64,000 nt of DNA from Basidiobolus meristosporus CBS 931.73 (GCA_002104905.1 MCFE01000400.1:1-64000); one strand, 5' to 3'. Positions 33,821 to 49,647 are shown, numbered from the stretch's first letter. Numbers and translations: made by a program. The notes: generated from the sequence alone by a model not told the origin.

Positions 33821-36800
33821 ATGAGTGAAGAAAAGCCAAAATTTAGCTCTTCAGAAGAAATGTTGGCCTATATTGAGAGTCTTGAACAACAAGTTGCTGA
33901 GTTAGCCGGTCAAGGACAGTCCCACACAACTGAGCCTGCGGCCCTCCCTAGTCTGGACCCAAGAATGGGTAGGCAGACAGACTTGGACTCTTTACATTTT
34001 GTGAACACCCAGAGATCATGGTTTACTGGTCAAGGTATACAGAGAGAGGGTGAAGCCTCATCTGTAAGACCTGCAGTGCCTCCCAATTCCTTGAATCTTG
34101 GAGAAGATGGGCAAGGCTCTCTGGACTTCACAAAACAATATAGAGCAACAAATCTGAAACTTCAGAAACCCAACATCTTTGAAGGCAAAAGACACACTGC
34201 CACTCTAGAGACTTGGATATTTGAAGTAGAGCAGTACCTATACTTCTCAGATGACTCTGAAGAAGTCAAAGTACATTATGCCTGTTCACTTTTCAGAAAG
34301 GAAGCAACCATGTGGTGGAAACTTCACATTCAAGGAATGAATAGGGGCATCTTTCCACCCATAGCCTCCTGGGCTGACTTTGTTAAAGCATTGAGAAAGA
34401 GGTTTACACCTATCAATGCTGATAGAATGGCAAGAGAAAAACTGTCCAAACTCTTTCAAGCCAAGTCTGTTCAAGAGTACAATGAGCAGTTTAACTTGCT
34501 TAGTATGGAAATTCAAAACATGCCTGATACTGAACTACTTGAGCAATACCTAAGAGGCCTGAAATCCAACACTAGATGGGAAATTGAATACAAAGACCCC
34601 AAAACCCTAATAGAGGCTATGGAACTGGCAGAAAGATATGATGCCATACACTTCAGAAGGGCTGTCAACCACAGAATTGGTCACTCAAGAACTACTACAG
34701 GCTTCAAAGCCAATAACCACATACCTATTGGTAGTCAACCAATCACTGAACAAGGTGCACACTACTCCCAAACACTGGAGCCTATGGACCTAGATGTTAT
34801 GCAGAGCACACCAAGACCTTCTAAAGAGGAATGCTTCAAGCTTGGACTATGCTTTTACTGCAAGGAACAGGGTCATAAAGTCAATGAATGCCCAAAGAGG
34901 CCATTACAAAGAGTATTCCAACTCTCCACTAAGGAGGAGGAGCACACAATCAGCCTTGTTAAGGAATATCAGAGGACTCAGAGCTTATATACTACCCCAA
35001 AGATACTGAAACTCCCAGGGATTCTCAACAACAACCAATGTGTCTCTGTACTCATTGACAGTGGAGCAACTGATGTCTACATTGCAAAAGATGTAGCTGA
35101 TCAGATGAAGCTACAAACAATCCCTTGCCCCCCAATTCACATCCTCTGTGCCACCAAGGAATCAATTATAGTGAACAGCAGGACTGAACCCTTGACTTTA
35201 CAAATCAGGGACTTCCAAGACACCATTTCCCCAATTATCATACCCCAAGCCAACTTTGAAATCAATGTGGGACAAACTTGGCTAAGAAAGCACAATCCTG
35301 ACATAAACTGGCAGACTCAGGAAGTTGTAATCAACAAGGATGATGCAAAATATCATCTGTCACCCAAACCAACCCTGGACAAAGGCAATGCACCAGAACA
35401 CACCATATCAAAGAAACAGCTTGCCCACTCTATCAGACAGAATCCCAAACTGTTGCACATGATAGCCTTTGCCAAAATCCAAGAGACCACAGAAGTGACA
35501 AATGACAGGCTCAAGACCTTGTTAGCAGAGTTTCAAGAGGTTTTTCCCAAGGAAATCCCTGCACTACCCCCAAGCAGAGAGATTGACCATGCCATAGAAG
35601 TAACAGATGATAAACCAAGAAACAGAGCCCCATATAAGTTCTCCCCAAAGGAAATGGAGACTTTGAAGGAAACATTGAAGGACTACCTGGCCAAAGGCTG
35701 GATAAAACCCAGTAAATCACCATGGGGAGCTCCAGTACTCTTTGCTCCAAAGAAGGATGGGAAGCTACGGTTCTGTGTGGACTACAGGGCCCTAAATGCA
35801 ATCACTGTCAGAAATTCCTACCCATTACCAAGAATTGATGCCCTCTTTGACCAACTGGGGAAGGCAAAGATATTCTCTAAAATAGACCTGGCATCTGGAT
35901 ATCACCAAATCAGAATTAAGCCTGAAGACACCTCTAAGACAGCATTCAACACAAGATATGGTCATTATGAGTTTGTTGTGATGAGCTTTGGCCTGACTAA
36001 TGCCCCAGCAACATTTCAGACACTCATGAATAGCATCCTGGAACCATATTTAGAGAAATTTGTCCTGGTCTACTTAGATGACATTCTGATCTATAGTACC
36101 AGCATGGATGACCACATGAAGCACTTGAAGACAGTACTGGCTATACTAAAAAAGCACAAGCTATATGCACAACTTCCTAAGTGTGAATTCCTCACCAGAT
36201 CAGTTGAATACCTTGGTCACATAATCTCAGATAAAGGACTACACATGGATCCAGCCAAGATAGATGCTATCCAGAAATGGGAAGCCCCAAAGTCACTCAC
36301 TGAAATGAGATCCTTCCTGGGACTTGCATCATATTACAGAAGATTCATCAGGGACTTTGCAACTATTGCAGCCCCCCTTACAGACTTGACCAAAAAAGAG
36401 AAAGACTATATATGGACCCCAAACTGTGAGACAGCTTTCCTAACTCTGAAAGAAAAGCTATGCCAAACTCCTGTGCTTCAGTTGCCTGATTTCTCAGAAC
36501 CTTTCTGTGTATACACTGATGCTTCAGATCTAGCTGTTGGAGGGGTACTGACTCAAAAAGAACACCCAGTTGCTTATGAGTCCAAAAAGCTATCAGTAAC
36601 TGAACAAAACTACCCAGTCCATGAAAAAGAACTCTATGCCATACTACATTGTCTGAGAGTGTGGAGATGCTACTTGGAGGGCAAACACTTTGTGGTATAT
36701 ACAGATCATGCATCCCTAAGATACATTCACACCCAGAAGCTATTATCCAGAAGAATAACTAGATGGATTGAAGAACTACAACAATTTGATTTTAAAATCC

Positions 36801-38170
36801 ACTACCTCCCTGGGCCAAAGAATACAGTTGCTGATGCACTCTCAAGGCAACATATATCAATGGTAGATCATGAGTTGGACTGGCCAGAATACATGCCAGA
36901 GTACTTGGCAAGTCAGACAATGCCAGAAGATTTATCACAGGAAGTAAGAGTCAAGATTAAGAAAGAAGCAGAGAATTTCTCATATGGTGAAGACGAGGTA
37001 CTTTACAGACACATGGAAGAAATAGGGCCTGTACCATATATTCCATTTGTATACAGAGGTGACATGATAATCAAGAATCATAAAGCCTTTGGACATCTGG
37101 GCATCCAAGGAACTTATGAAATAACTAAAAGGAGAGCCTGGTGGCCTAAACTCAAACAATTTATAGCTGAGACCCTCAAGACCTGCCCTGAGTGCCAGCT
37201 GGCTAGACCATACAACAAGGAACATGCCCCATTAGAACCACTGACTCCAGTTCCAGCATTCTACAGATGGGGAATTGACTTCATTGGAATCTTGCCTGAA
37301 ACTTCAAGAGGGAACAAGTGGATCATAACTGCAATTGACCATACCACTAAGTGGTGTATAGCAAAAGCCATGCCAGCAGCTACTGCAAAAAATGTTGCAA
37401 AATTCCTTTACCTGGAAATCTTTATGCAGTTTGGATGCCCAGGTGAAATTCTGTCTGACAGAGGAGCAAACTTTTTGGAACAAACCTTGAAAGAATACCT
37501 TCAGATAATGGGGGTTAGACATTTGAAGACATCAGCATACCACCCTAGAACAAATGGGGTTACAGAGAGGTTCAATGGACTCTTTGGGAAGATGCTGACT
37601 ACTTATGTCAAAGGAGCCAAACATAAGTGGGATGAATTTGTACATCAAGCACTCTTTGCCTGTCGTATTAGAGTCCATTCAGCAACACAAAAGTCCCCCT
37701 TCTACCTAGTGTATGGTACACATCCAAGAATCCCAGGTGATACCTTACCACCATACATCTGGGACTTAAAGAACCAAAAAGACTTGGCAGAATTCAGAAC
37801 AAGGGAACTGGAAGAATTAGGACATGCAAGACATGATGCCATCAAGAATTTAAAACGACAAGCAGAGAAGATGAAAGAACAGTACAACAAAACAGTGGTA
37901 ACAAAACCCTTAACTTTGGGAAAACTTGTATTAGTCCGAAATGAAAGTAGGCTAAAACTAGAACCACATTGGGTTGGACCCTTTATTATCACAAGAGAAA
38001 TGCCCTTCAACACATTTCAACTCGCAGACATGTCAGGTAAAGTAAAGGAGGACCTAGTGCATAGAGACCGACTAAAGGAAGCACAGCTAAAAAACCCAAT
38101 GACACCACCAACCAAATACTGGTATTACAAGTCCGATAGACAGGACTCTTCAGGAGAAGAACCTCTTTAA
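33821..38170 (+). CDS. Gag-Pol polyprotein, single ORF, 1449 aa (gag, CCHC knuckle, protease, RT, RNase H, integrase; no chromodomain seen)
   Basis: [14 protein letters not shown]; LIDSGAT; YLDDILIYS; YTDASD; H-x4-H...CPEC; GIDFIG / SDRG / TERFNG; GPF motif. Confidence 0.98.
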
Positions 38171-38502: not shown

Positions 38503-38574
38503 GCCTGCTTAGCGCAGTGGTAGCGCGTCAGTCTCGTAAACTGAAGGTCGCCAGTTCAATCCTGGCAGTAGGCA
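38503..38574 (+). tRNA. tRNA-Thr(CGT), intronless, 72 nt
   Basis: Acceptor GCCTGCT/AGTAGGC+A, D stem GCGC/GCGC, anticodon stem TCAGT/ACTGA with loop CT-CGT-AA, T stem GCCAG/CTGGC with TTCAATC. A T-rich terminator (TTTATTTT) follows. Confidence 0.95.
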
Positions 38575-39460
38575 TTTATTTTAATATTGAATAAATCAAG
38601 ATGGTCACCAACTCAACTCACCCACCACAAGGATGGAAATGGTCGACCATGTCAAGATTGAGGCGACCCCAGTGTCACCTCCTTCGGGATCCCCTGACAC
38701 CGGAGAAAACCCAAAGGTTACAGGGAAGGTAGGCCTCACACATGAGTCAACCCGAACGCCCTGCTGGAGGTGGGGGTGGGAGTGTGTGATGATATGATAT
38801 CAGTGAATTTCAAACCATCAATGGCATGGTTTCGTCCGAAAAGGGCCAAACATATGCACGACAATAAGCCTCATATTCTGGACTGGCCCCTAATTCTGAT
38901 TTTGTGCATAGCTGCAAGTGGAGCCTATATCGGATGTTGGTAGTTTCTGGGAAGGAGTTCTGATGCACTACCTGGGGTATTAGATTGTTCACCCAGAGTT
39001 GAGGAGCCGATGGTACATCAAGAGTCCATTCCTTGTCCATCGATGATGATAGGAGTTTCTTGAAGATGAATGCCAGAAGGATGTATATCTGCAAACCCAA
39101 TTGTGATTCTTTTAATTTCTTTGCAGGTGAGTTCAAGTTCACTACCGCTAATGTAGGTAAGAAAGAAAAGGATGTAGGCAGGAATCCCATTGGGTTATTT
39201 GACCGGGCTGTGATGAATCAATTTACTGACGCCCTAGCCCATTGAGTTCACAACGCCAAGTGGGCTGGATTTCACCCCCAGTATGCGTGTCGATCAGGTT
39301 CTTCCTCCCCAGCCAAGCTCTCGCTCAGATTATGTGGTTTGAATGGATTGGTATTCTTGGCAGGTAGATATGTCACTTGGCAACTCTTCTTATAAATGTC
39401 GAACCTCGCTGATCCTCCGAACACAACATCCCATTACCACTGATTCATACCAACGCAGCC

Positions 39461-39769
39461 ATGCAACTCACAAAGCTAACCTTGATCACTGCCCTCTTCG
39501 CTGTCATCATGGCCCAGTCTCCCACCCCGACCGTGGTCACAACCACCAGTCCTGGCTCTACCGCCACCACACCTGCTACTACCACTGCCAACAACGGAGG
39601 GGTCTTCCCAAGCATCTGGAACAAGGTCACCTCGGGGATCGCATCTGTCCCATCACACGTTCGCAACGCCACCGAGGATGTGTTTGGGAACTCTGGGGAG
39701 CGAGTGAACCTTTCACTCGGCAGTGTGATGCTCACGGGCGGGGCACTATGGTATCAAATGAGGGCCTGA
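39461..39769 (+). CDS. Small secreted, putatively GPI-anchored protein, family copy 1 (102 aa)
   Basis: Signal peptide MQLTKLTLITALFAVIMA, T/S/P stalk, conserved VFPSIWNKVTSGIASVPSHVRNATEDVFGNSG, hydrophobic tail. TATAAA at 39391. Four paralogs nearby. Confidence 0.88.
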   Translation: MQLTKLTLITALFAVIMAQSPTPTVVTTTSPGSTATTPATTTANNGGVFPSIWNKVTSGIASVPSHVRNATEDVFGNSGERVNLSLGSVMLTGGALWYQMRA

Positions 39770-40263
39770 TTGAGAGTGATCGAAAGGAACTAGCATTTGA
39801 ACCAACACAATTCTATACAGCCCATGCATTCTGTCCCACCATCCTTGCTCCATGATATGTAACATACCTAAGTCAGTTAATAAATGCCTACAGTGATCTC
39901 ACCACCTGATTGTTGAGATATCCCTCCATCCAACCAATTGGTGGTAGTCGATGAACCCCGATGGAAAACACACTCTCTGTATCACCTTTTATGCTACATT
40001 CGGAACTGGTTGACAATGATCAGGATTGGCATTGAACCGCATTACCCTCGACAGTGGTGTTCGTGTACACCATTCGGAGTTTCCTCGCATTGAACATAAT
40101 TAGCACAAAAGAATAACCACCAGTCGGTGCACCCATTCTGTCACCTTACAACAACGACCTTGGGTCCTTGACTCATCGCTGGCCCTCTGGTGGAGTATAA
40201 AACGCTCCCCCGCCTCTTCCTCTGCCACCCACTCGAGTTCCTTACCCCCCCCCTCCGTCCATA

Positions 40264-40509
40264 ATGAAGTTCTCCATCCTTTTGTCCGCTGTTGCCGCCC
40301 TCTACATCACCGGAGCGGATGCCGCCTGCTACTGCCTCTCCGCCACCGGAAAAGGGACATTCTGCGGATTCCAACTGACCGGTGACTCGTGCGTGACCGA
40401 TCATCTCTACCAATGCAATGGCTACCGCCAGCCGGTATTCCAAGACCTAGGAAAGTGCGCCAACGGATGTCAAGGAACCTACCCATCCCAGAGCGACCAC
40501 TGCAAATGA
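40264..40509 (+). CDS. Secreted cysteine-rich peptide, copy 1 (81 aa, 8 Cys)
   Basis: Signal peptide MKFSILLSAVAALYITGADA. Mature spacing CxC-x9-C-x8-C-x7-C-x13-C-x3-C-x10-C. TATAAAA ~65 bp upstream. Confidence 0.9.
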   Translation: MKFSILLSAVAALYITGADAACYCLSATGKGTFCGFQLTGDSCVTDHLYQCNGYRQPVFQDLGKCANGCQGTYPSQSDHCK

Positions 40510-40660
40510 AGGCATAACGCACGCAGTAGGTTATTCCCTCAAAACAGCCTAGATCTAATTGGCAGCAATGCTGCATCTTTGACAAGGAATTAATAAAAGT
40601 CGAGGTGATACGGATGAGTTCTTGAGAATAATCGACTGAAACTGGTGGGGATAGGGAGAA

Positions 40661-40691
40661 TGGTACTGGTACTGGTACTGGTACTGGTACT
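40661..40691. repeat. (TGGTAC)5 microsatellite
   Basis: Read directly from the sequence. Confidence 0.95.
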
Positions 40692-41343
40692 ATGACTGAT
40701 AGATAAGAATTAGGAGGTTGAACTTAGAGGCCAAACCATAGCGAACGAGCTCACTTGACCAGAAGTAGAAACGCGGTCAAACACATTTCCCCGTGACCAA
40801 GGTGAGCAATCTCTCTGCATCACGCACAGGTTTGGATCTTCAATACATGCCCGAACCTCTCACTCCCCCACCCCCACAATGCACCGATGAAATAGGCATT
40901 GCATCACCCAATTCGTAATCGATGATATTTCACCAGATCACCCAAACCCGACATATAGACACACGAATCAGTTCCAATTCAGACAAAATGTCCCCCAGGT
41001 ATTACCCAACCAACCAATGAATAGCAGCCTACGAACCTCGATAGAAAGCCTGCCTGCTGTACCACCCATCATGCTACGTTCGGAACTGGTTGACAATGAT
41101 CAGGATTGGCATTGAACCGCATTACCCTCGACAGTGGTGCTCGTGTACACCATTCGGAGTTTCCTCGCATTGAACATAATTAGCACAAAAGAATAACCAC
41201 CAGTCGGTGCACCCATCCTGTCACCTTACAACAACGACCTTGAGTCCTTGACTCATCGCTGGCCCTCTGGTGGAGTATAAAACGCTCCCCCGCCTCTTCC
41301 TCTGCCACCCACTCGAGTTCCTTACCCCCCCCCTCCGTCCATA

Positions 41344-41589
41344 ATGAAGTTCTCCATCCTTTTGTCCGCTGTTGCCGCCCTCTACATCACCGGAGCGGAT
41401 GCCGCCTGCTACTGCCTCTCCGCCACCGGAAAAGGGACATTCTGCGGATTCCAACTGACCGGTGACTCGTGCGTGACCGATCATCTCTACCAATGCAATG
41501 GCTACCGCCAGCCGGTGTTCCAAGACCTAGGAAAGTGCGCCAACGGATGTCAAGGAACCTACCCATCCCAGAGCGACCACTGCAAATGA
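41344..41589 (+). CDS. Secreted cysteine-rich peptide, copy 2 (protein identical to copy 1)
   Basis: Same 81-aa sequence; one synonymous GTA/GTG difference seen. Confidence 0.9.
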   Translation: MKFSILLSAVAALYITGADAACYCLSATGKGTFCGFQLTGDSCVTDHLYQCNGYRQPVFQDLGKCANGCQGTYPSQSDHCK

Positions 41590-41988
41590 AGGCACAACCC
41601 TCGCCGTAGGTAATGATCGTAATGGGCCCTCCCCTCCAAAATAGCCAAGTTGCACGACACATTAATTTCCCATCCACGCTGCGGCCCATACAAGGAATGA
41701 ATAAAGTGGAAGTGATCAAGACGTCATATGGGATACGACATGCTTCATTATAGACGGTGTGCCCCGGTTGTAGTACCAGCATTCCGACGATAAAACGCAA
41801 CGTCGTCTGCGCGGTTGAGATGAGCGATGACTACATATTGGTATGGGATCGATCGGAGGTTCGCTTTGGGGAGGTTTATTGGCTGATTGTGGTATGTTAC
41901 ATATCATGGAGCAAGGATGGTGTGAGGAATGGTTTGGCTAGTGTACAATATTGGAAGTGTGGACACGAAATAGATCACCTCACCCCAA

Positions 41989-42297
41989 CTACGCATTCAT
42001 TTGGTACAGGAGCACTCCACCTGTGAGCATCACACTGCCGAGTGAAAGGTTCACTCGCTCCCCAGAGTTCCCAAACACATCCTCGGTGGCATTGCGAACG
42101 TGTGATGGGACAGATGCGATTCCCGAGGTGACCTTGTTCCAGATGCTTGGGAAGACCCCTCCGTTGTTGGCAGTGGTAGTAGCAGGAGTGGTGGCGGTAG
42201 AGCCAGGGCTGGTGGTTGTGACCACGGTCGGGGTGGGAGACTGGGCCATGATACCTGCGATGAGAGCAGTGATCAAGGTTAGCTTTGTGAGTTGCAT
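41989..42297 (-). CDS. Small secreted, putatively GPI-anchored protein, copy 2 (102 aa)
   Basis: Start at the internal MQLTK ATG, by comparison with copy 1. Shares the promoter and TATA box. Confidence 0.88.
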   Translation of the reverse strand: MQLTKLTLITALIAGIMAQSPTPTVVTTTSPGSTATTPATTTANNGGVFPSIWNKVTSGIASVPSHVRNATEDVFGNSGERVNLSLGSVMLTGGVLLYQMNA

Positions 42298-43017
42298 GGC
42301 TGCGTTGGTATGAATCAGTGGTAATGGGATGTTGTGCTTCGGAGGATCAGCGAGGTTCGACATTTATAAGAAGAGTTGCCAAGTGACATATCTATCTGCC
42401 AAGAATACCAATCCATTCAAACCGCATTATCTGAGCCAGAGCTCGGCTGGGGAGGCAGAGCCCGATCGACACGGATGCAAACTGAGAGATCCAGCCGGCT
42501 TGGCATGACCGAGTAAATCGGGGATTCGATGGGCTTGGGCGTCAGGTAGATAGATTGATCACAGCCCGGATAAATCTGGAATTACGCGTCGTTCCTGGCT
42601 TGGTTAGAACAGGTTGAGGTGTGAGAGATGAGCTCAAGTGACCATGAGGTTCCAGTTGCTCCATTTGCCCTTTCGTACAGCTACGCCAGCACGCCTCAAA
42701 TAGACTTCTGTTGCTCGATGTCTTTTTGCTCGCATTAGGCTTGCTGCCAGTCAATGCGTAAGAGTGGTACGGTTATTTCACAAGGACTTGAGGGAATCCA
42801 GCGTGTTATTTATTTCGCATTTGAGGATGATCATCCAGGGTGCATCACCGACACTCCGATCAAGAAATACCGGTCCAAGGGAGGCTAGGATCTATTCTTA
42901 AGAGACGAGCTCAATGAGTGTTTATTGACTGGCTTGGGTATGTTACATATCAGAGGGCAATGGTGTGAGCTAGTGTACAACATAGAAAGCGCGAATGCGA
43001 ATTAAACTCCACCCCAG

Positions 43018-43326
43018 TTACGCATTCATTTGGTATAGGAGCACTCCACCGGTGAGCATCACACTGCCGAGTGAAAGGTTCACTCGCTCCCCAGAGTTCC
43101 CAAACACATCCTCGGTGGCGTTGCGAACGTGTGATGGGACAGATGCGATTCCCGAGGTGACCTTGTTCCAGATGCTTGGGAAGACCCCTCCGTTGTTGGC
43201 AGTGGTAGTAGCAGGGGTGGTGGCGGTAGAGCCAGGGCTGGTGGTTGTGACCACGGTCGGGGTGGGAGACTGGGCCATGATACCTGCGATGAGAGCAGTG
43301 ATCAAGGTTAGCTTTGTGAGTTGCAT
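43018..43326 (-). CDS. Small secreted, putatively GPI-anchored protein, copy 3 (protein identical to copy 2)
   Basis: Tandem duplicate of copy 2 at offset 1029 bp; only synonymous differences were seen. Confidence 0.88.
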   Translation of the reverse strand: MQLTKLTLITALIAGIMAQSPTPTVVTTTSPGSTATTPATTTANNGGVFPSIWNKVTSGIASVPSHVRNATEDVFGNSGERVNLSLGSVMLTGGVLLYQMNA

Positions 43327-43999
43327 GGCTGCGTTGGTATGAATCAGTGGTAATGGGATGTTGTGTTCGGAGGATCAGCGAGGTTCGACATTTATAAGAA
43401 AAGAGGTGCCAAGTGGCATATCTACATGCCAAGAATACCAATTCATTCAGATCACGAGTTAAGGGATCAAATGTTGGCCGGCTTGGCGAGAGCTAGTGGA
43501 TTAGGTATTCGATGGGCTTAGGATATGTGGAAGGCTGATTGAAATTCGATTCAAGATTCATCATAGCCCGGCCTAAAATGGAAGCCCAATTCCCTACTAT
43601 TGGCCACTCACTCAACATGATGCAACTAGTGGAGGGTTGGATGTACAATGACTTGCGGCAAACCAGACAAGCTCTTCGCCGCGACCGATCTATCATTCAT
43701 GCGCCTGTGGGGAAGGGCTGGATCACCGCCAAGTCTACCAGGTAGAATGGAACGAGCACAGATACGTATTGGGAACACTCTGGGGTATATGTAGATACAT
43801 TAGGAATTTGCATCAGCAGGTGTAACAATTGTTTTTTATTCACATCTGGGCAATGCAATTGAAAGTCCCATTGTGGCTCGGGATCTACATGGATATGGCA
43901 CAGAGACAGGTGCCCCTGATGGTGGACGCAAATGCTGGCAAGTTGAGACAACGCGATGTGAGTGTGGATGCGGATGCGCTCAGAGATCCTCTTCCTTAC

Positions 44000-44317
44000 T
44001 TAGACGCCCATCTGGTATAGAATCGCTCCACTGCCAAGCACCAAACCGCCAAGCGAAAGGTCGATTCGGGCCCCAGAGTTGCCGAACACACTGTGAGTCG
44101 TGTTCCGGATGTTTGACGGTGCAGCGGCAATACCGGAGGTGATCTTATTCCAAATACTCGGGAACACTCTTGATTTACCCGCAGTGGTGCGAGCAGTGGT
44201 GCTAATGGGGCTGGCGAGGCTTGTTGAGGTAGCTGTCGGAGCTGGAGTTGGAGTTGAAGACTGGGCCATAGTGTTAGTGAGGAGAGCGGCAATCAATATT
44301 TGCTGGATGAGATGCAT
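44000..44317 (-). CDS. Small secreted, putatively GPI-anchored protein, copy 4 (105 aa, diverged)
   Basis: MHLIQQILIAALLTNTMAQS...VFPSIWNKITSGIAAAPSNIRNTTHSVFGNSG...LSLGGLVLGSGAILYQMGV; start inferred from paralogs. Confidence 0.87.
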   Translation of the reverse strand: MHLIQQILIAALLTNTMAQSSTPTPAPTATSTSLASPISTTARTTAGKSRVFPSIWNKITSGIAAAPSNIRNTTHSVFGNSGARIDLSLGGLVLGSGAILYQMGV

Positions 44318-44642
44318 GGTATGGTGAAACACGATAGAAGTTACGTTGAATGAATGGAACCATTGCTTGTATTTATAATGGTGGATGCACCAAGATTCCC
44401 TTTCTACGGGCTGGATACGAGGGATAGACGGCCACTTGTTGGTCGAAGGAAAGACCTTGATGGGAGGATGAAAGTATGATAGACACACCAGGATCCAACG
44501 TAGATAGATTACTGATGGAGGTACGATGCAACCAATACTCATGGTCAGGTTAAAATGAAGCATTTATTAAAGTCGGTATGCAGATACATATCCTTTGCTG
44601 TATACATTATGCATATATGATGAGATAGATAAGATCAACGAA

Positions 44643-44951
44643 CTAAGCCCTCATTTGAAGCAGAAGCACTCCGCTGGTGAGCATCACGCCCCCCAGCGAA
44701 AGGTAGACGCGCGCCCCAGAGTTGTTGCCGAATACATCGTTCGTGGCATTACGAATGTTCGACGGTGCCGCAGCAATACCGGAGGTGATCTTGTTCCATA
44801 CGCTCGGAAACACCCCCGCCTCACTGGTGGTAGTGGCAGGAGTAGCGGTGATAGCGCTGGAGACACTTGACGAGGCAGAAGTCGGAGCCGGCGACTGAGC
44901 CGTAACGCTAGCGAGGAGAGCGGCAATGAAAGTGGCTTTGAAGAAGTGCAT
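44643..44951 (-). CDS. Small secreted, putatively GPI-anchored protein, copy 5 (102 aa, diverged)
   Basis: MHFFKATFIAALLASVTAQS...VFPSVWNKITSGIAAAPSNIRNATNDVFGNNSG...; TATAAA upstream at ~45000. Confidence 0.87.
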   Translation of the reverse strand: MHFFKATFIAALLASVTAQSPAPTSASSSVSSAITATPATTTSEAGVFPSVWNKITSGIAAAPSNIRNATNDVFGNNSGARVYLSLGGVMLTSGVLLLQMRA

Positions 44952-45060
44952 GGTGATGGGTTGTATGGTGACGGTAGTGGGAACTCGCCTGCGTAGTCTT
45001 TATAGAAACGAACCGCTTGGGCTTGGTTGGGCTGGAGCAAAGGCTAAGTCAGATGGTATA

Positions 45061-45100
45061 GGGTATGGGTAAGGGTAAGGGTAAGGGTAAGGGTAAGGGT
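45061..45100 (+). repeat. (GGGTAA)n hexamer tract with seven GGG runs; potential G-quadruplex
   Basis: GGGTATGGGTAAGGGTAAGGGTAAGGGTAAGGGTAAGGGT is read directly. Confidence 0.9.
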
Positions 45101-45461
45101 ACGGTAACATAGGGAGATGTCTTAACGAATGCTAATGCGATGACCGAATTTAGAAGCAACAAGGTTCCAAAAAACCGGAGTGCTGAGCATCTCTTGATGC
45201 AGGGACAGCAGCAATGAGGAACCATTGCGATCAGGGAAATCCATTGTAAATTGGATTTCATAAAACCATGATGCAGTCGTGCATACCATTCAAGGTGAAT
45301 CCACCCTATTGTTCCGCACAATAGATCGACAATAGACCATCTCCCTGCTCTCGACATGCACCCCTTATTGCACGCAACATCCGTGGATAAATACCCAACG
45401 GCTCTCCACCGGAATCGTCAGTTCATCTCATCTCCATCCACATCTTCCCAACCAAGTCAAC

Positions 45462-45584
45462 ATGCGCTTCAACGTTGCCCTCTGCACTTTCATCGCCCTC
45501 CTCGTCTTCACATCCGTGGTCGTGGACGCGCAAGGAGCGAAAGGTCAGCCCGCCGCCAAGGGGAAGAAGGGCTCCAAACAGTAA
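45462..45584 (+). CDS. 40-aa secreted cationic micropeptide (not in the ORF track)
   Basis: MRFNVALCTFIALLVFTSVVVDA|QGAKGQPAAKGKKGSKQ*. Good start context (CAACATGC), GATAAATA ~75 bp upstream, AATAAA downstream at ~45737. Confidence 0.65.
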   Translation: MRFNVALCTFIALLVFTSVVVDAQGAKGQPAAKGKKGSKQ

Positions 45585-45858
45585 TCCCCAACCCCGCGCA
45601 GCCCAGCCTCCACCAAGGAAAAACCACACTCGGATTGAATTTACATGTGGCGTGAACCACAGGAACCATTTCTTGAATTTATATACATTTCAAATGTTTG
45701 GGATCGGCATCGATGGATTCGATGCACTCAAAATACAATAAAAGTGTGGGGGGAGGGGTGGTCTCTACTATTCACATACATTGCACTTTCTCTAGATTCA
45801 TGTCGGGTGGATGGGATGGGATGGGATGGGGTACACGTTGGAGTCGGCGGGTGGCTCA

Positions 45859-46632
45859 TTATTTAGCAATGCCGAGGTTGGAATTCAGATCCAACGACTC
45901 CTCCAACTCGACCAGCTGGCAAATCAAGCTCATGTTCGGGCAAATCGAATCACTACGCGATTTCACGTAGTCGTAGGCTTCGTTGACATTCATTCGTAAA
46001 GCACGCATAACGTACGCGATCATAAGACTTGCTGAGCGTGACACGCCAAGCTGACAGTGCACAAGTATACCCAGCTGCTTGGAACGCGCCTCGTCGATGA
46101 ATCGGAAGGCGTCCTGGAAGGATTTGAAAATGTTCTCCTCGTTGTGTCCCCAAGCCAGGCTTTTGTATCTCAGGATACGGGTGGGATCAGCGAGACAATC
46201 CCCATCCAGCTGAAGGGTGTACGATACGATGGATGGTGTGGTCGGGGACACCACCCCCTCAAAATACGGGGGATCTACCTCTTTGGCAACATTCAAGATG
46301 TAATGGATATCGTTTGTGACCAGCATCTCCTGATCACGAGCGTTCTTCTCGCAACCTAGGAATAGAAAGGGCAGAATGCATATTGGGCCAGCGTTGTATG
46401 AATCTTGCTGTCCAGGGCTGGTCTCCCCAGCGATCTGAAGCTGGTTGACCTGTTGTGTGATGGAGGTTGTGGGTGTCTCGACGACTTTTCCGCTGGTTTC
46501 AGTCGCCCCGCACCCCTTTGGAACGATTAACGACAGATTCTTCGAGTTGCGCCGTTTGTTCCTCAGAGGAGGCTTTTTCGCGAGAGAGGGGAATGGGGAG
46601 GTGGAGATGGGTTTGGAGAAGGCAAGGGTCAT
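45859..46632 (-). CDS. Dual-specificity (MAP kinase) phosphatase, Msg5/Pmp1-like
   Basis: Catalytic VHCQLGVSRS; LFLG, ILNVA and CPN motifs; N-terminal KRRNSKNLSL resembles the Msg5 docking segment. Start placed at MTLAFS, since the upstream ORF extension translates a microsatellite. Confidence 0.92.
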   Translation of the reverse strand: MTLAFSKPISTSPFPSLAKKPPLRNKRRNSKNLSLIVPKGCGATETSGKVVETPTTSITQQVNQLQIAGETSPGQQDSYNAGPICILPFLFLGCEKNARDQEMLVTNDIHYILNVAKEVDPPYFEGVVSPTTPSIVSYTLQLDGDCLADPTRILRYKSLAWGHNEENIFKSFQDAFRFIDEARSKQLGILVHCQLGVSRSASLMIAYVMRALRMNVNEAYDYVKSRSDSICPNMSLICQLVELEESLDLNSNLGIAK

Positions 46633-46633
46633 G

Positions 46634-46658
46634 GTTTCGTTTCGTTTCGTTTCGTTTC
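46634..46658. repeat. (GTTTC)5 microsatellite just upstream of the phosphatase ATG
   Basis: Read directly from the sequence. Confidence 0.9.
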
Positions 46659-47247
46659 GGACGGGGGGAAGGGGACGAATTCTGGCGAAAGGATCAAATA
46701 AGACAGGGAGCAGCGTCGGCTCTTTCCACATTATATGCGATGACACGGGATGATCAAATAATTCCATCAGGCAAGATTAGAGGCTAATTTTGGACACTGG
46801 GAAAATTCATTGCCACCCTCTATTAGACGGGATTAACAACAGGCCAGATGATTGGCAGGTGTCGTTTCAGGTCGAGCATCATTGAGCTTCTTCGGCCCAT
46901 GTGATATGGATGCTTATTGAAGTGCCAATATGCTTCGGCCATATACGAGGTTAATACCCTTCGTTTTGGTCAATATACGTCCAGATTTGCTATTCTAGGC
47001 GGCATGCGAGGCCCAAATAAGCTAGATACCACCAAGTTGTGCTTAATATCCATATATATGGCCCAATGAGTCCAGCCACAAAAGTCGGTGAACCGTGTAC
47101 TGGAGATGGACAGGACCACCACTGTTTCCTTGATTAGCCCTCATGTGACAAGCAGCGGTGGGTTCGATCGTACCACCGCGCTTCCATGGATCGATTCTGG
47201 ATTGATTAGGGACTGGATGCGATGGTTGATTCTGGATTTATTCAGGA

Positions 47248-47320
47248 TTATTCTGGTGATTTTCATCTCCGCCACTTCCATCAATTATTCTGGTGGTTTT
47301 CATCTCCGCCACTTCCATCA
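47248..47320. repeat. 37-bp tandem duplication downstream of myotubularin
   Basis: TTATTCTGGTG(A/G)TTTTCATCTCCGCCACTTCCATCA occurs twice. Confidence 0.85.
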
Positions 47321-47415
47321 TCAACGGCGACAAGAATAGGGTCATAGGGGGTGGGGATATGGTGGGTCGGCGGGTTCGATTTGGTAAACATACAAATATG
47401 TGGAGATGTATGGCC

Positions 47416-49647
47416 CTAGTGGACCCGAAGATTGCTGAGATTGGTGGACATCTCGATCATCCCCTCCTCCGAGGATTCGTTGATGTCTTCGTCCCGGCGG
47501 CTGAAGAGACCGCTCCAGTACTTGAGGTACTGAGTGTCGGGTGCGATGACCGGGTCTCGCTCATCTTGCGCTGGCTCGTACACCTGGTTGCGGAACTCCT
47601 CGATGTTCGAGTTGAAGTAGGACCAGACGGAGAAGGTCTTCTTCTCCGACTGCGCCTCGACCTTCTCCTTCTCGCAGTTGAACAGGAACGTGCCGAACTG
47701 GCAGGAGTACACGTGATAGTGCAGCTGGATCAAGAAGCGCTCGTTGAATTCGAATCGGGTGGGGTTTTGCGTCCAGATCTGATAGACGCAATCCAGGAAT
47801 TGGTGGAACACTGGGGAGGAGTAGCGTCCTTGGTTCTGCTTGAAATACCGGTGGTGGACATTGTTGAAGGTGCTGGCGGCCGCGTTCGTGGTCGTGTTCA
47901 CCAGGAAGTTTTTCTCGCTCGATAGATGGCCGCAACGCTCGGTGAATTTGTGCCCGAAAGACACCCACTCTTTCTCGATAAGAATCTCGAAGCCTCGGAT
48001 CGTCCTGTAGAACGGATCCAGACAAAGCTCGGCTAGAGCAGTCAGCTGGGAAGTTCTGTCCCATCCATCGGAGCAATGGACAAGCACGTGAGAGTTGTTC
48101 TGTGAGACGTTGTTCACTATCACCGCCGCCCCCTCCAGGATGGACCCCAGGTGTTTGAGCCAGTTCGTCTTGGACAGCAGCAGTTTGTTGACCACCCCGG
48201 AAGGGTCGGTGGATTGCATGGCTAGCAAATGGATTAACATGCGGGATGGGATGGTGAGAGGTCGTCTCTTTGGCCTTACCTTCGACCACCTTGTTCAGGC
48301 TGTCGCGCATCACGTGGATGTTGTCGATGCCGAGATACAACTTCTTGCAGTTTTTGTAATTCTCCATGTTCTCGGAGCCGGCGCCAATGGCAACGTTGGC
48401 CATGGCGTTGGCGGTGGGCCGTGCATCCACAATCAAGTTGGACATGCTTGGGGAGATGGAGTTCGGCGTTTTCGGGACGTTGCTGGCGAAGATGGCCTCC
48501 ACAAGCTTCTCATCCTGCACCGATCGAGCCTGCTTCAATCCGACCATTGGCTGGCTTGATCTGGAGATGGTGGCCTAATGGTATGGAGCAAAGGTTGGTT
48601 GATCAGTTCACTCAAATGAACGCTCAGTCTATTGTAAATAACAACCATATTGGGGCCGTGGATGTAGCTCAGCACGGGTATCCGATTTTTGCTGCGGTAC
48701 TTGGCAGCGTAGTTAATGACGGTGTCGCTGATCTTCCCGGGAACGGCGAGCACTCGAGGGTATGTCGAGCAAAGCTGGCCGGGGACGTTAGACTCAATGA
48801 GAGCGTAAGGGTTATGGGGATGCTGCATACCTGGAAATCCTGGTTGAGCTGTGTGAATCTCCAACTGCTACTTTTGGTTCCAACTCCCAGTCTTTCATAC
48901 TCCTCGATTGGATTGTAGATGGTCCAACCGTTGTCGACGGTGAACTTTGGAAATGGCTGATAAAAGAAAGCATAGAGCCGACTGATGGAATCTAAAAAAT
49001 CCGCCCAAATGTGGTTCTTAGCCATAGATGCCAGTACTTCTTGCCAACCCTGGCTGTGGTAAAACCTGCAAGGAAGACTATGCTATGCTGTCATTGAATA
49101 TCTTACCAACACATATCAGCTTCTGTATACTCTCAAAGACATCGATGGCGTCTCTCTCTCTCTCAATTAGAAGCGACACAAACAAGAAGTTGTGGCACTT
49201 GATGTTTAATGGATGGTAGCCGTTTGGGGTTAGCGCCTTTCGTTCCACCGTATGGACAATTGGGTAGGAGATCTACATGCAAGCCCAATGGAACCAACCG
49301 TTGGCGTTAGAGATGAACTGGAGATAGAAATACTGCTACTGGCTTTTGATAAGAAAAAGGATGTCCGACCCATAATTCCTGCTCAGGATGATTGAATATA
49401 AGTTGGTGTGCGGTTAAATGAAGTGTGCCTATGAATGCACGACGATCTTTCTCCAGCCGGACGTTATCGACCTGTTGGGGTGAAGCAATAGAAGTTAGTA
49501 AGCTGGTCTAGTTATGCTAGGGAGAGACCTGATTGTAGCGGATCTTGGCAAGAATCGTCTATTACTCAAGGTAGAGCCATCCCCTCCTTGCTCATACATA
49601 TGCTTGTTGTGAAGATGACTGACCTTCGCAATCTTGATGAAATCCAT
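47416..49647 (-). CDS. YMR1: Myotubularin-family PI3P phosphatase, 7 exons: 49647-49624, 49471-49370, 49272-49107, 48991-48831, 48774-48646, 48574-48280, 48221-47416 (560 aa)
   Basis: N-terminus MDFIKIAK|VDNV resembles yeast Ymr1. Catalytic VHCSDGWDRT; SSQPMVG, WVSFGHKF and PVFHQFLD motifs. All six introns are GT-AG and the exon lengths sum to 1683 nt, in frame. Confidence 0.95.

Follow-up and report, generated by a model that had tools for sequence, protein, structure and literature searches.

A cluster of short intronless open reading frames for predicted secreted and surface proteins at the edge of a transposon-rich block in Basidiobolus meristosporus

Our subject is a group of eight intronless open reading frames (ORFs) packed into positions 39461-45584 of a 64,000-nucleotide (nt) stretch of DNA from Basidiobolus meristosporus CBS 931.73 (GCA_002104905.1, MCFE01000400.1:1-64000), the whole of which is referred to here as the window. 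An initial annotation of this DNA had proposed eight tiny intronless genes at this locus, and the ORF call recovers each of them at the place and on the strand proposed, with products of 40-105 amino acids (aa). They comprise a G family of five members (102-105 aa), a Cys family of two (81 aa), and a single ORF, M, of 40 aa. The three families had been described as unrelated, and tblastn of all eight products against the window indeed returned neither similarity between families nor any extra copy. It had likewise been claimed that no other gene interrupts the cluster, and no Pfam-bearing ORF was found between its members, the ORFs of the intergenic spacers giving no credible Pfam match. The lone spacer match, to a KH-domain family, is sub-threshold (E 0.0086, 16.4 bits against a cut-off of 30) and sits on a 99-aa ORF at 45356-45655 that overlaps M in another frame. 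The eight ORFs are as follows.

39461-39769, plus strand: G1, 102 aa, with a signal-peptide-like start, Ser/Thr-rich, and a tail like that of glycosylphosphatidylinositol (GPI)-anchored proteins
40264-40509, plus strand: C1, an 81-aa precursor of a putative 61-aa eight-cysteine miniprotein
41344-41589, plus strand: C2, the second Cys copy, its protein identical to that of C1
41989-42297, minus strand: G2, 102 aa, G family, matching the strict GPI consensus
43018-43326, minus strand: G3, 102 aa, G family, its protein identical to that of G2
44000-44317, minus strand: G4, 105 aa, a divergent G family member, matching the strict GPI consensus
44643-44951, minus strand: G5, 102 aa, a divergent G family member
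45462-45584, plus strand: M, 40 codons, signal-peptide-like at its start and ending in 17 Lys/Gly-rich residues; a candidate gene only

The placement of transcription signals follows these ORFs closely. Between positions 38600 and 45900 the two strands together carry eight TATAAA hexamers, seven of which stand 53-71 nt upstream of the starts of G1, C1, C2, G2, G3, G4, and G5, each in the matching orientation, and an AATAAA lies 75-160 nt past the stop codon of all eight ORFs. Representative distances are those of G1 (TATAAA at -70, AATAAA at +110), C1 (-68 and +83), G5 (-53 and +75), and G4 (TATAAA at -60). A TATA-like box had been claimed for every gene; the canonical hexamer is present in seven, whereas the sole candidate of M is GATAAATA at -75, with its AATAAA at +153. 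The eighth TATAAA occupies 45678-45683 on the minus strand, just downstream of M; unassigned and pointing leftwards over M, it hints at an antisense or alternative transcript.

At the protein level, all eight products begin with a signal-peptide-like N-terminus, in agreement with what had been claimed, as judged by a heuristic that combines hydrophobicity with the (-3,-1) rule: a hydrophobic region (h-region) with a nine-residue Kyte-Doolittle maximum of 2.2-2.9 is followed by an AXA-type (-3,-1) site in every case. Each ORF also scores best for codon usage in its own reading frame. We regard the G and C ORFs as genes because they show purifying selection, have homologues in another species, and possess exactly placed TATA and poly(A) signals, and these sequence features argue strongly that seven of the eight ORFs behave as genes.

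The history of the locus is written in its repeats. A self-blastn and repeat search of the window yielded the following duplication map.

39197-39884, no strand assigned: the G1 duplication unit, repeated in inverted orientation at 41875-42575 (85%) and at 43046-43455 (95.6%)
39926-40534, plus strand: the Cys duplication unit, repeated in direct orientation at 41006-41614 (identity 94.7% over the whole unit and about 99% over 40000-40509)
41874-42419, minus strand: the G2 unit, a direct repeat of the G3 unit at 42920-43449 (90.7% identical)

Since the G1 unit is inverted with respect to the G2 unit, the Cys pair lies between the two arms of an inverted repeat, one carrying G1 and the other G2. 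Repeats of this kind, about 700 nt long and 85% identical (G1/G2 units, 39197-42575), could allow inversion of the 2-kb segment that they enclose. The two Cys copies are nearly indistinguishable: their coding sequences agree at 245 of 246 nt, the single difference being synonymous, the 264 nt upstream are 98.9% identical, and from position 40000 to the stop codon the copies differ at 4 positions in 510 nt, one of them coding. They stand 1080 nt apart, with non-homologous spacers and homology that stops sharply on both sides, a pattern that suggests either a recent duplication or gene conversion of promoter and gene together. In the G family, about 70% of nucleotides agree between G4 or G5 and the other copies, a likeness confined to the coding region. 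The claim that both recent and old duplications are represented here is borne out by synonymous divergence (dS, Nei-Gojobori), which is 0.05 between G2 and G3, 0.2 between G1 and either of these, and saturated, above 1, for G4 and G5.

The five G proteins are 56-100% identical to one another. G2 and G3 are separated by four synonymous and zero non-synonymous differences, and G1 is 95% identical to both (ratio of non-synonymous to synonymous divergence, dN/dS, 0.14). The divergent copies are 56-58% (G4, with saturated dS and dN/dS of 0.19-0.27) and 58-61% (G5, dN/dS of 0.15-0.27) identical to the remaining members. Throughout the family dN/dS stays at 0.14-0.27 by the Nei-Gojobori method, a measure on which the G genes are constrained by purifying selection. 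This constraint is unevenly spread, dN being 0.07-0.17 over a 34-column core and 0.5-0.8 over the Ser/Thr-rich part. The common layout consists of a signal peptide, a Ser/Thr-rich stretch, an invariant 32-residue core, and a GPI-type tail. Over seven sequences, namely the five of the window and two of B. ranarum, 31 alignment columns are invariant, and the features retained by all include an Ala-Gln pair at the cleavage site, VFPS-x-WN, TSGIA, an Asn-x-Thr sequon, and VFGNSG.

Relatives of the G family were found within the genus. A profile word search returned P0003, which is the public model of G2 itself, and the B. ranarum proteins P0004 and P0005, with 51-58% identity, and nothing else; a pattern scan of metagenome contigs gave no confirmed G locus. 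In a tree of the family the B. ranarum pair is split from the five B. meristosporus copies with 97/95 support. Read from this tree, the expansion is species-specific, the family having either expanded within each species or had its copies homogenised. In the protein atlas all G neighbours score below 0.9; KRE1-type and CFEM-type GPI proteins occur among the weaker ones and serve as leads only.

How the G products would be processed can be read from their two ends and their core. A fungal GPI consensus, [NSGDAC]-[GASVIETKDLF]-[GASV]-X(4,19)-[FILMVAGPSTCYWNQ](10) at the protein end (quoted in PMC5555451), is strictly matched by five of the seven sequences (G2, G3, G4, P0004, and P0005), all five sharing the Asn of the NSG motif as their omega candidate, and is matched by none of the control proteins C1, M, and P0002. 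At the other end, a conserved cleavage site between Ala and Gln-(Ser/Thr) and an h-region of Kyte-Doolittle 2.2-2.9 are present in all seven, again by heuristic. Residues 48-63 have a helical hydrophobic moment of 0.46-0.49, which gives moderate support to a predicted amphipathic helix in the core. The signal peptide would probably be cut after the invariant Ala, directly before Gln, and the next 27 or so Ser/Thr/Pro-rich residues would probably be O-mannosylated. The invariant 32-residue core that follows, with its moderately amphipathic stretch and N-glycosylation sequon, closes in FGNSG, the Asn of which is the likely site of GPI attachment. Once the hydrophobic tail beyond it had been cleaved off, a glycopeptide of some 59 residues would remain, either retained at the plasma membrane or transferred to the cell wall. 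With secretion, anchoring, and glycosylation all predicted from sequence, the G genes may thus be described as encoding putative micro-mucins.

Yeast Cwp2 and Ccw12 are examples of small Ser/Thr-rich GPI-anchored fungal wall proteins. Such proteins, and mucin-type GPI glycopeptides, resemble the G products in their signal peptide, short Ser/Thr-rich segment, C-terminal GPI consensus, and length of about 100 aa. However, the G family has no sequence similarity to them, and its parts are arranged in the opposite order to the usual head, stalk, and anchor: the Ser/Thr-rich part is N-terminal, and the strictly conserved core of 32 residues adjoins the attachment site. A Basidiobolus-only micro-mucin with its conserved part beside the GPI site would be an unusual layout for a surface protein, and lends itself to tests of whether it plays a part in life in the gut.

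None of the families had been recognised in the initial annotation, and this stands as far as Pfam is concerned: no family was assigned to any of the eight ORFs, with sub-threshold matches only (New_glue for G1, E 0.13; DUF7472 for M, E 0.093). The Cys genes, however, are members of an eight-cysteine family that has no name and also occurs in Lobosporangium and Podila. A word search with C1 matched B. ranarum P0002 at 74% identity and, beyond it, only the public model P0001. An exhaustive HMMER scan with a two-sequence profile added nine relatives of 77-105 aa, and a profile word search four further ones; the distant relatives number about 15, and the family alignment comprises 18 members. Lobosporangium transversale, with three members, and Podila epigama account for those with a named source; both are Mortierellomycota, and the remaining additions stem from metagenomes or read-archive assemblies. 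Two of the three L. transversale members, P0011 and P0026, share one contig of 401,939 bp and may be locally duplicated there. One apparent relative from the HMMER scan, P0008 (2337 aa), is a laminin-G repeat protein and was rejected as a false positive. A metagenome pattern scan for a sub-clade of the Cys family gave no confirmed locus.

Every member of the Cys family has a signal peptide and eight invariant cysteines, which in the mature peptide occupy positions 2, 4, 14, 23, 31, 45, 49, and 60. Also invariant are a Gly after the third cysteine and a Tyr before the fifth (Tyr 29 of the mature peptide). Against Pfam at E<=10, the 18 members gave no credible family, the five matches obtained each being a chance match of a single member with E of at least 0.051. 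A first AlphaFold model built from two sequences (pLDDT 38.8) was discarded; a second, built from the 18-sequence alignment and targeting the mature peptide, reached a pLDDT of 89.8 and a pTM of 0.73, with three main strands. Each Cys gene would accordingly yield, on this prediction, a secreted, beta-rich miniprotein of 61 residues, probably held by four disulfide bonds. An unnamed eight-cysteine family that is predicted to fold confidently and extends across two early-diverging fungal phyla is a cheap target for antifungal and chitin-binding tests.

Little of this is visible in the public annotation. Translated pieces compared by script identify the 136-aa model P0001 as C1 residues 1-57 joined to C2 residues 3-81 through a false intron of 915 nt (GT at 40435 to AG at 41349). 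P0001 is therefore a chimera of two Cys genes that puts a signal peptide in the middle of a protein. The model P0003 extends G2 by 22 residues at the N-terminus, starting from the ATG of the TATAAATG box (window 42298-42368). Because this ATG lies inside the box and is out of frame in G1 and G3, owing to a 1-nt indel, the 22-residue extension is an annotation artefact. An exact look-up in a collection of 15 billion proteins found no entry for G1, G3, G4, G5, the 81-aa Cys protein, or M (three of the queries, that for G3 among them, carried a stop codon), and a profile search likewise gave no separate clusters for the sequences that the exact look-up had missed. Short genes are thus badly under-annotated in the B. 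meristosporus reference genome, with one fusion, one false start, and the others absent, and secretome surveys that draw on the public list will miss the genes of this cluster.

Taken as a whole, the locus is probably a birth-and-death cluster of small secretory-pathway genes, formed by local duplication at the border between a low-GC, transposon-rich block and ordinary genes, a reading that we hold with moderate confidence. That the products are secreted or surface proteins, as had been claimed, is well supported by sequence features such as signal-peptide-like starts and the GPI consensus. The Cys miniprotein, whose family is unnamed and occurs in early-diverging fungi, is most likely either a binder of a cell-wall polymer, chitin for example, or an antimicrobial; a cell-wall-directed binder and an antimicrobial peptide seem to us about equally likely. 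The cluster may also serve in interaction with a host or with microbes, as had been suggested. Gene structure, selection, family ranges, predicted fold, and mis-annotation are demonstrated properties of the locus, whereas secretion, anchoring, glycosylation, and every biological role discussed here are inferred.

Several observations count against parts of this interpretation. The signal peptide and GPI calls rest on heuristics and one published regular expression, and G1 and G5 fail the strict GPI pattern, solely through an Arg at the penultimate position (-2). The G family was searched by a word-based tool and one metagenome pattern scan, and remoter relatives could exist. All fold matches of the Cys family fall below meaningful levels (Foldseek E of at least 2.2, Z of at most 3.4). 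The mature B. meristosporus Cys peptide has a net charge of 0 (four Lys+Arg against four Asp+Glu), which would set it apart from typical cationic antifungal miniproteins, while some of its relatives, such as P0013, are strongly cationic. Finally, M has neither a homologue nor a canonical TATA box, and the canonical TATAAA in its vicinity is on the opposite strand.

The alternatives for the individual products can be weighed against this background. The Cys peptide could be a distant member of the bubble-protein family of antifungals (bubble protein, 1uoy, and PAFC, 6trm; PF09227) that inhibits competing fungi. These proteins resemble it in being secreted and beta-rich, with about 60-64 residues and eight cysteines, and they supply the best, though weak, structural matches to the model: 1uoy and 6trm head the Foldseek list from the PDB (E 2.3-3.4, TM 0.35-0.42, 27-28% identity), PAFC leads a VIA-align comparison with 48,161 chains (Z 3.4), and 1uoy reaches Z 3.3 in a second run, with root-mean-square deviations of 3.1-3.2 over 49 residues. 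The protein atlas places the Bubble cluster at 0.82. A gamma-core motif, defined as GXCX3-9C (PMC7865535), is present as G-x-C-x3-C in 16 of the 18 aligned members, although it is short and weakly specific. However, the VIA-align scores tie with those of unrelated chains, none of the 18 members matches the PF09227 hidden Markov model at E<=10, and PDB sequence searches with both profile and single sequence found neither 1uoy nor 6trm, returning only chance rows (E 0.77 and 1.3). The cysteines of PAFC stand at 3, 18, 28, 30, 38, 49, 54, and 64 with the pairing abcabdcd (PMC7865535), a spacing unlike that of the Cys family, and the charge of the Cys peptide is neutral. Moreover, bubble-type proteins are reported only from Ascomycetes and Basidiomycetes, that is, from Dikarya, in a recent survey (PMC13525654), whereas the Cys family ranges over Zoopagomycota and Mortierellomycota. 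Membership in the bubble-protein family is unlikely. A lectin of the peritrophin/Avr4 type, coating the fungus's own wall, for instance against gut chitinases, would draw on a different set of matches. Like Cys, the CBM14 proteins (Der p 23, Avr4, peritrophin-A) are small beta domains stabilised by disulfides, and weak fold matches to chitin-binding proteins recur. VIA-align gives Z 3.3 for Der p 23, 2.5 for Blo t 12, 2.4 for the CHIT1 binding domain, and 2.1 for Avr4, and in the viral Foldseek list more than half of the entries (E of at least 2.2) are VP91 or chitin-binding type-2 proteins. The invariant aromatic residue, Tyr 29, would suit such a role, and UniRef names one Lobosporangium relative a CBM1 domain protein. 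Yet every one of these fold matches is insignificant, no CBM_14 or CBM_1 match was obtained from Pfam with the 18 members at E<=10, and eight cysteines in the observed spacing do not fit the peritrophin-A pattern of six. A chitin-binding lectin of this type is accordingly a possible but doubtful identity as modelled. No fold search gave a significant match, and the function of the Cys proteins is therefore to be treated as a lead and not as a result. For the G proteins, the corresponding alternative is that they are not GPI-anchored, the C-terminal stretch being a retained membrane anchor or the product being plainly secreted. This would accommodate the failure of G1 and G5 to match the strict consensus, a Tyr-Gln pair conserved within the tail, a tail of moderate hydrophobicity (Kyte-Doolittle maximum 1.6-2.6), and an omega region conserved far beyond what is usual at GPI sites. 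It is nevertheless distinctly unlikely: the hydrophobic tail spans no more than about 15 residues and stops 3-4 residues short of the C-terminus, and the small residues N-S-G stand at the canonical distance before it in all seven sequences.

Other alternatives concern the locus as a whole. Some of the ORFs, chiefly M, might be chance ORFs or dead copies, with which the absence of five ORFs (four of the G family, and M) from public protein sets would agree, together with the lack of an M homologue, its merely TATA-like box, and the opposite-strand TATAAA. The gene-like properties of the G and C ORFs set out above speak against this, and so does M itself, whose codon-usage score is the best of six frames and whose GC content at third codon positions is 0.80, so that the proposal is highly improbable for the cluster. 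M further has a good h-region with a putative cleavage site between VDA and Q, a pyrimidine-rich leader, and a downstream AATAAA; judged from its sequence, the chance that it is a real gene is about even, in which case it may yield a secreted Lys/Gly-rich 17-mer. A functional module, by contrast, would treat the Cys protein as a toxin or lectin and the G proteins as its partners in self-protection, reception, or display, with all genes co-regulated. The tight packing without an intervening gene, the inverted repeats of G1 and G2 around the Cys pair, and the same compact TATA and poly(A) design in all genes are compatible with it. So is a weak resemblance of G5 in atlas features (score 0.81) to the GPI-anchored protein KRE1, which is a killer-toxin receptor, although this score is under the threshold for a lead. 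The co-regulated module that had been proposed is, however, not supported, because a k-mer search of the independent promoters found nothing common beyond TATAAA (the 6-mer CATACC equalled it in count, and two such 6-mers are close to the shuffle expectation of 0.89), because the three B. ranarum homologues, from two of the families, lie on three different contigs (9.3, 17.6, and 13.2 kb), and because the Cys family is present in Mortierellomycota, where no G relative was found. We give the module little credence, and there is no evidence for a single functional machine. A more specific version, in which Cys represents either a distinct fold or an ancient offshoot of the bubble-protein type and the G micro-mucins are the protection or receptor of the producer, as in a toxin-plus-immunity cassette, is very unlikely; if true, it would extend the bubble-type class, so far confined to Ascomycetes and Basidiomycetes, to Zoopagomycota and Mortierellomycota.

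The birth-and-death cluster that we favour instead has familiar counterparts. Small secreted proteins (SSPs) without Pfam families are abundant in zygomycete fungi and form a substantial part of their secretomes (PMC9391592). Like the lineage-specific SSP and effector clusters that lie by repeat-rich DNA in other fungi, the genes described here are several, tiny, signal-peptide-bearing, Pfam-less, and locally duplicated at a boundary with transposon-rich DNA. They differ in belonging to an early-diverging, animal-gut fungus, and in that five of the eight look surface-anchored and not soluble. The cluster type is therefore one already known in fungi and overturns no current view; what is new is the two undescribed families, which merit simple bench tests.

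The surroundings of the cluster have been taken for a 38-kb block of transposons and tRNA genes. Its transposon-rich edge, with an intact Ty3/gypsy element, is confirmed, but a single tRNA gene is present and the block is otherwise ORF-poor DNA of 38-43% GC. Two features mark the boundary.

33821-38170, plus strand: an intact Ty3/gypsy polyprotein ORF of 1449 aa, with gag, protease, reverse transcriptase, RNase H, and integrase domains (Pfam)
38503-38574, plus strand: tRNA-Thr(CGU), found by ARAGORN and by Rfam (69.9 bits), where the transposon-rich block meets the cluster

The tRNA gene is the only one detected in the whole window by either program, and it lies some 330 nt beyond the Ty3/gypsy ORF, itself the final element of the low-GC block. 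This polyprotein is one of only two ORFs of at least 250 aa in the first 38.6 kb, and from 38 kb on the GC content rises to 47-51%. Beyond the cluster the genes are ordinary, encoding a dual-specificity phosphatase, a myotubularin-like phosphatase, a PPR protein, a BBE-type FAD oxidase, a GNAT acetyltransferase, and a sugar transporter. The two phosphatase genes adjoin each other on the minus strand at 45859-48547; the dual-specificity phosphatase is a 302-aa ORF, and the myotubularin-like phosphatase is divided between two ORFs that overlap, a split that points to an intron or a frameshift. Three microsatellites punctuate the cluster and its edge, namely (TGGTAC)x5 at 40661-40691, 3' of C1, (GGATG)x4.4 at 45809-45830, 3' of M, and (GGTAAG)x7.7 at 45055-45101, which lies in the divergent promoter region of G5 and M and reads CTTACC on the other strand.

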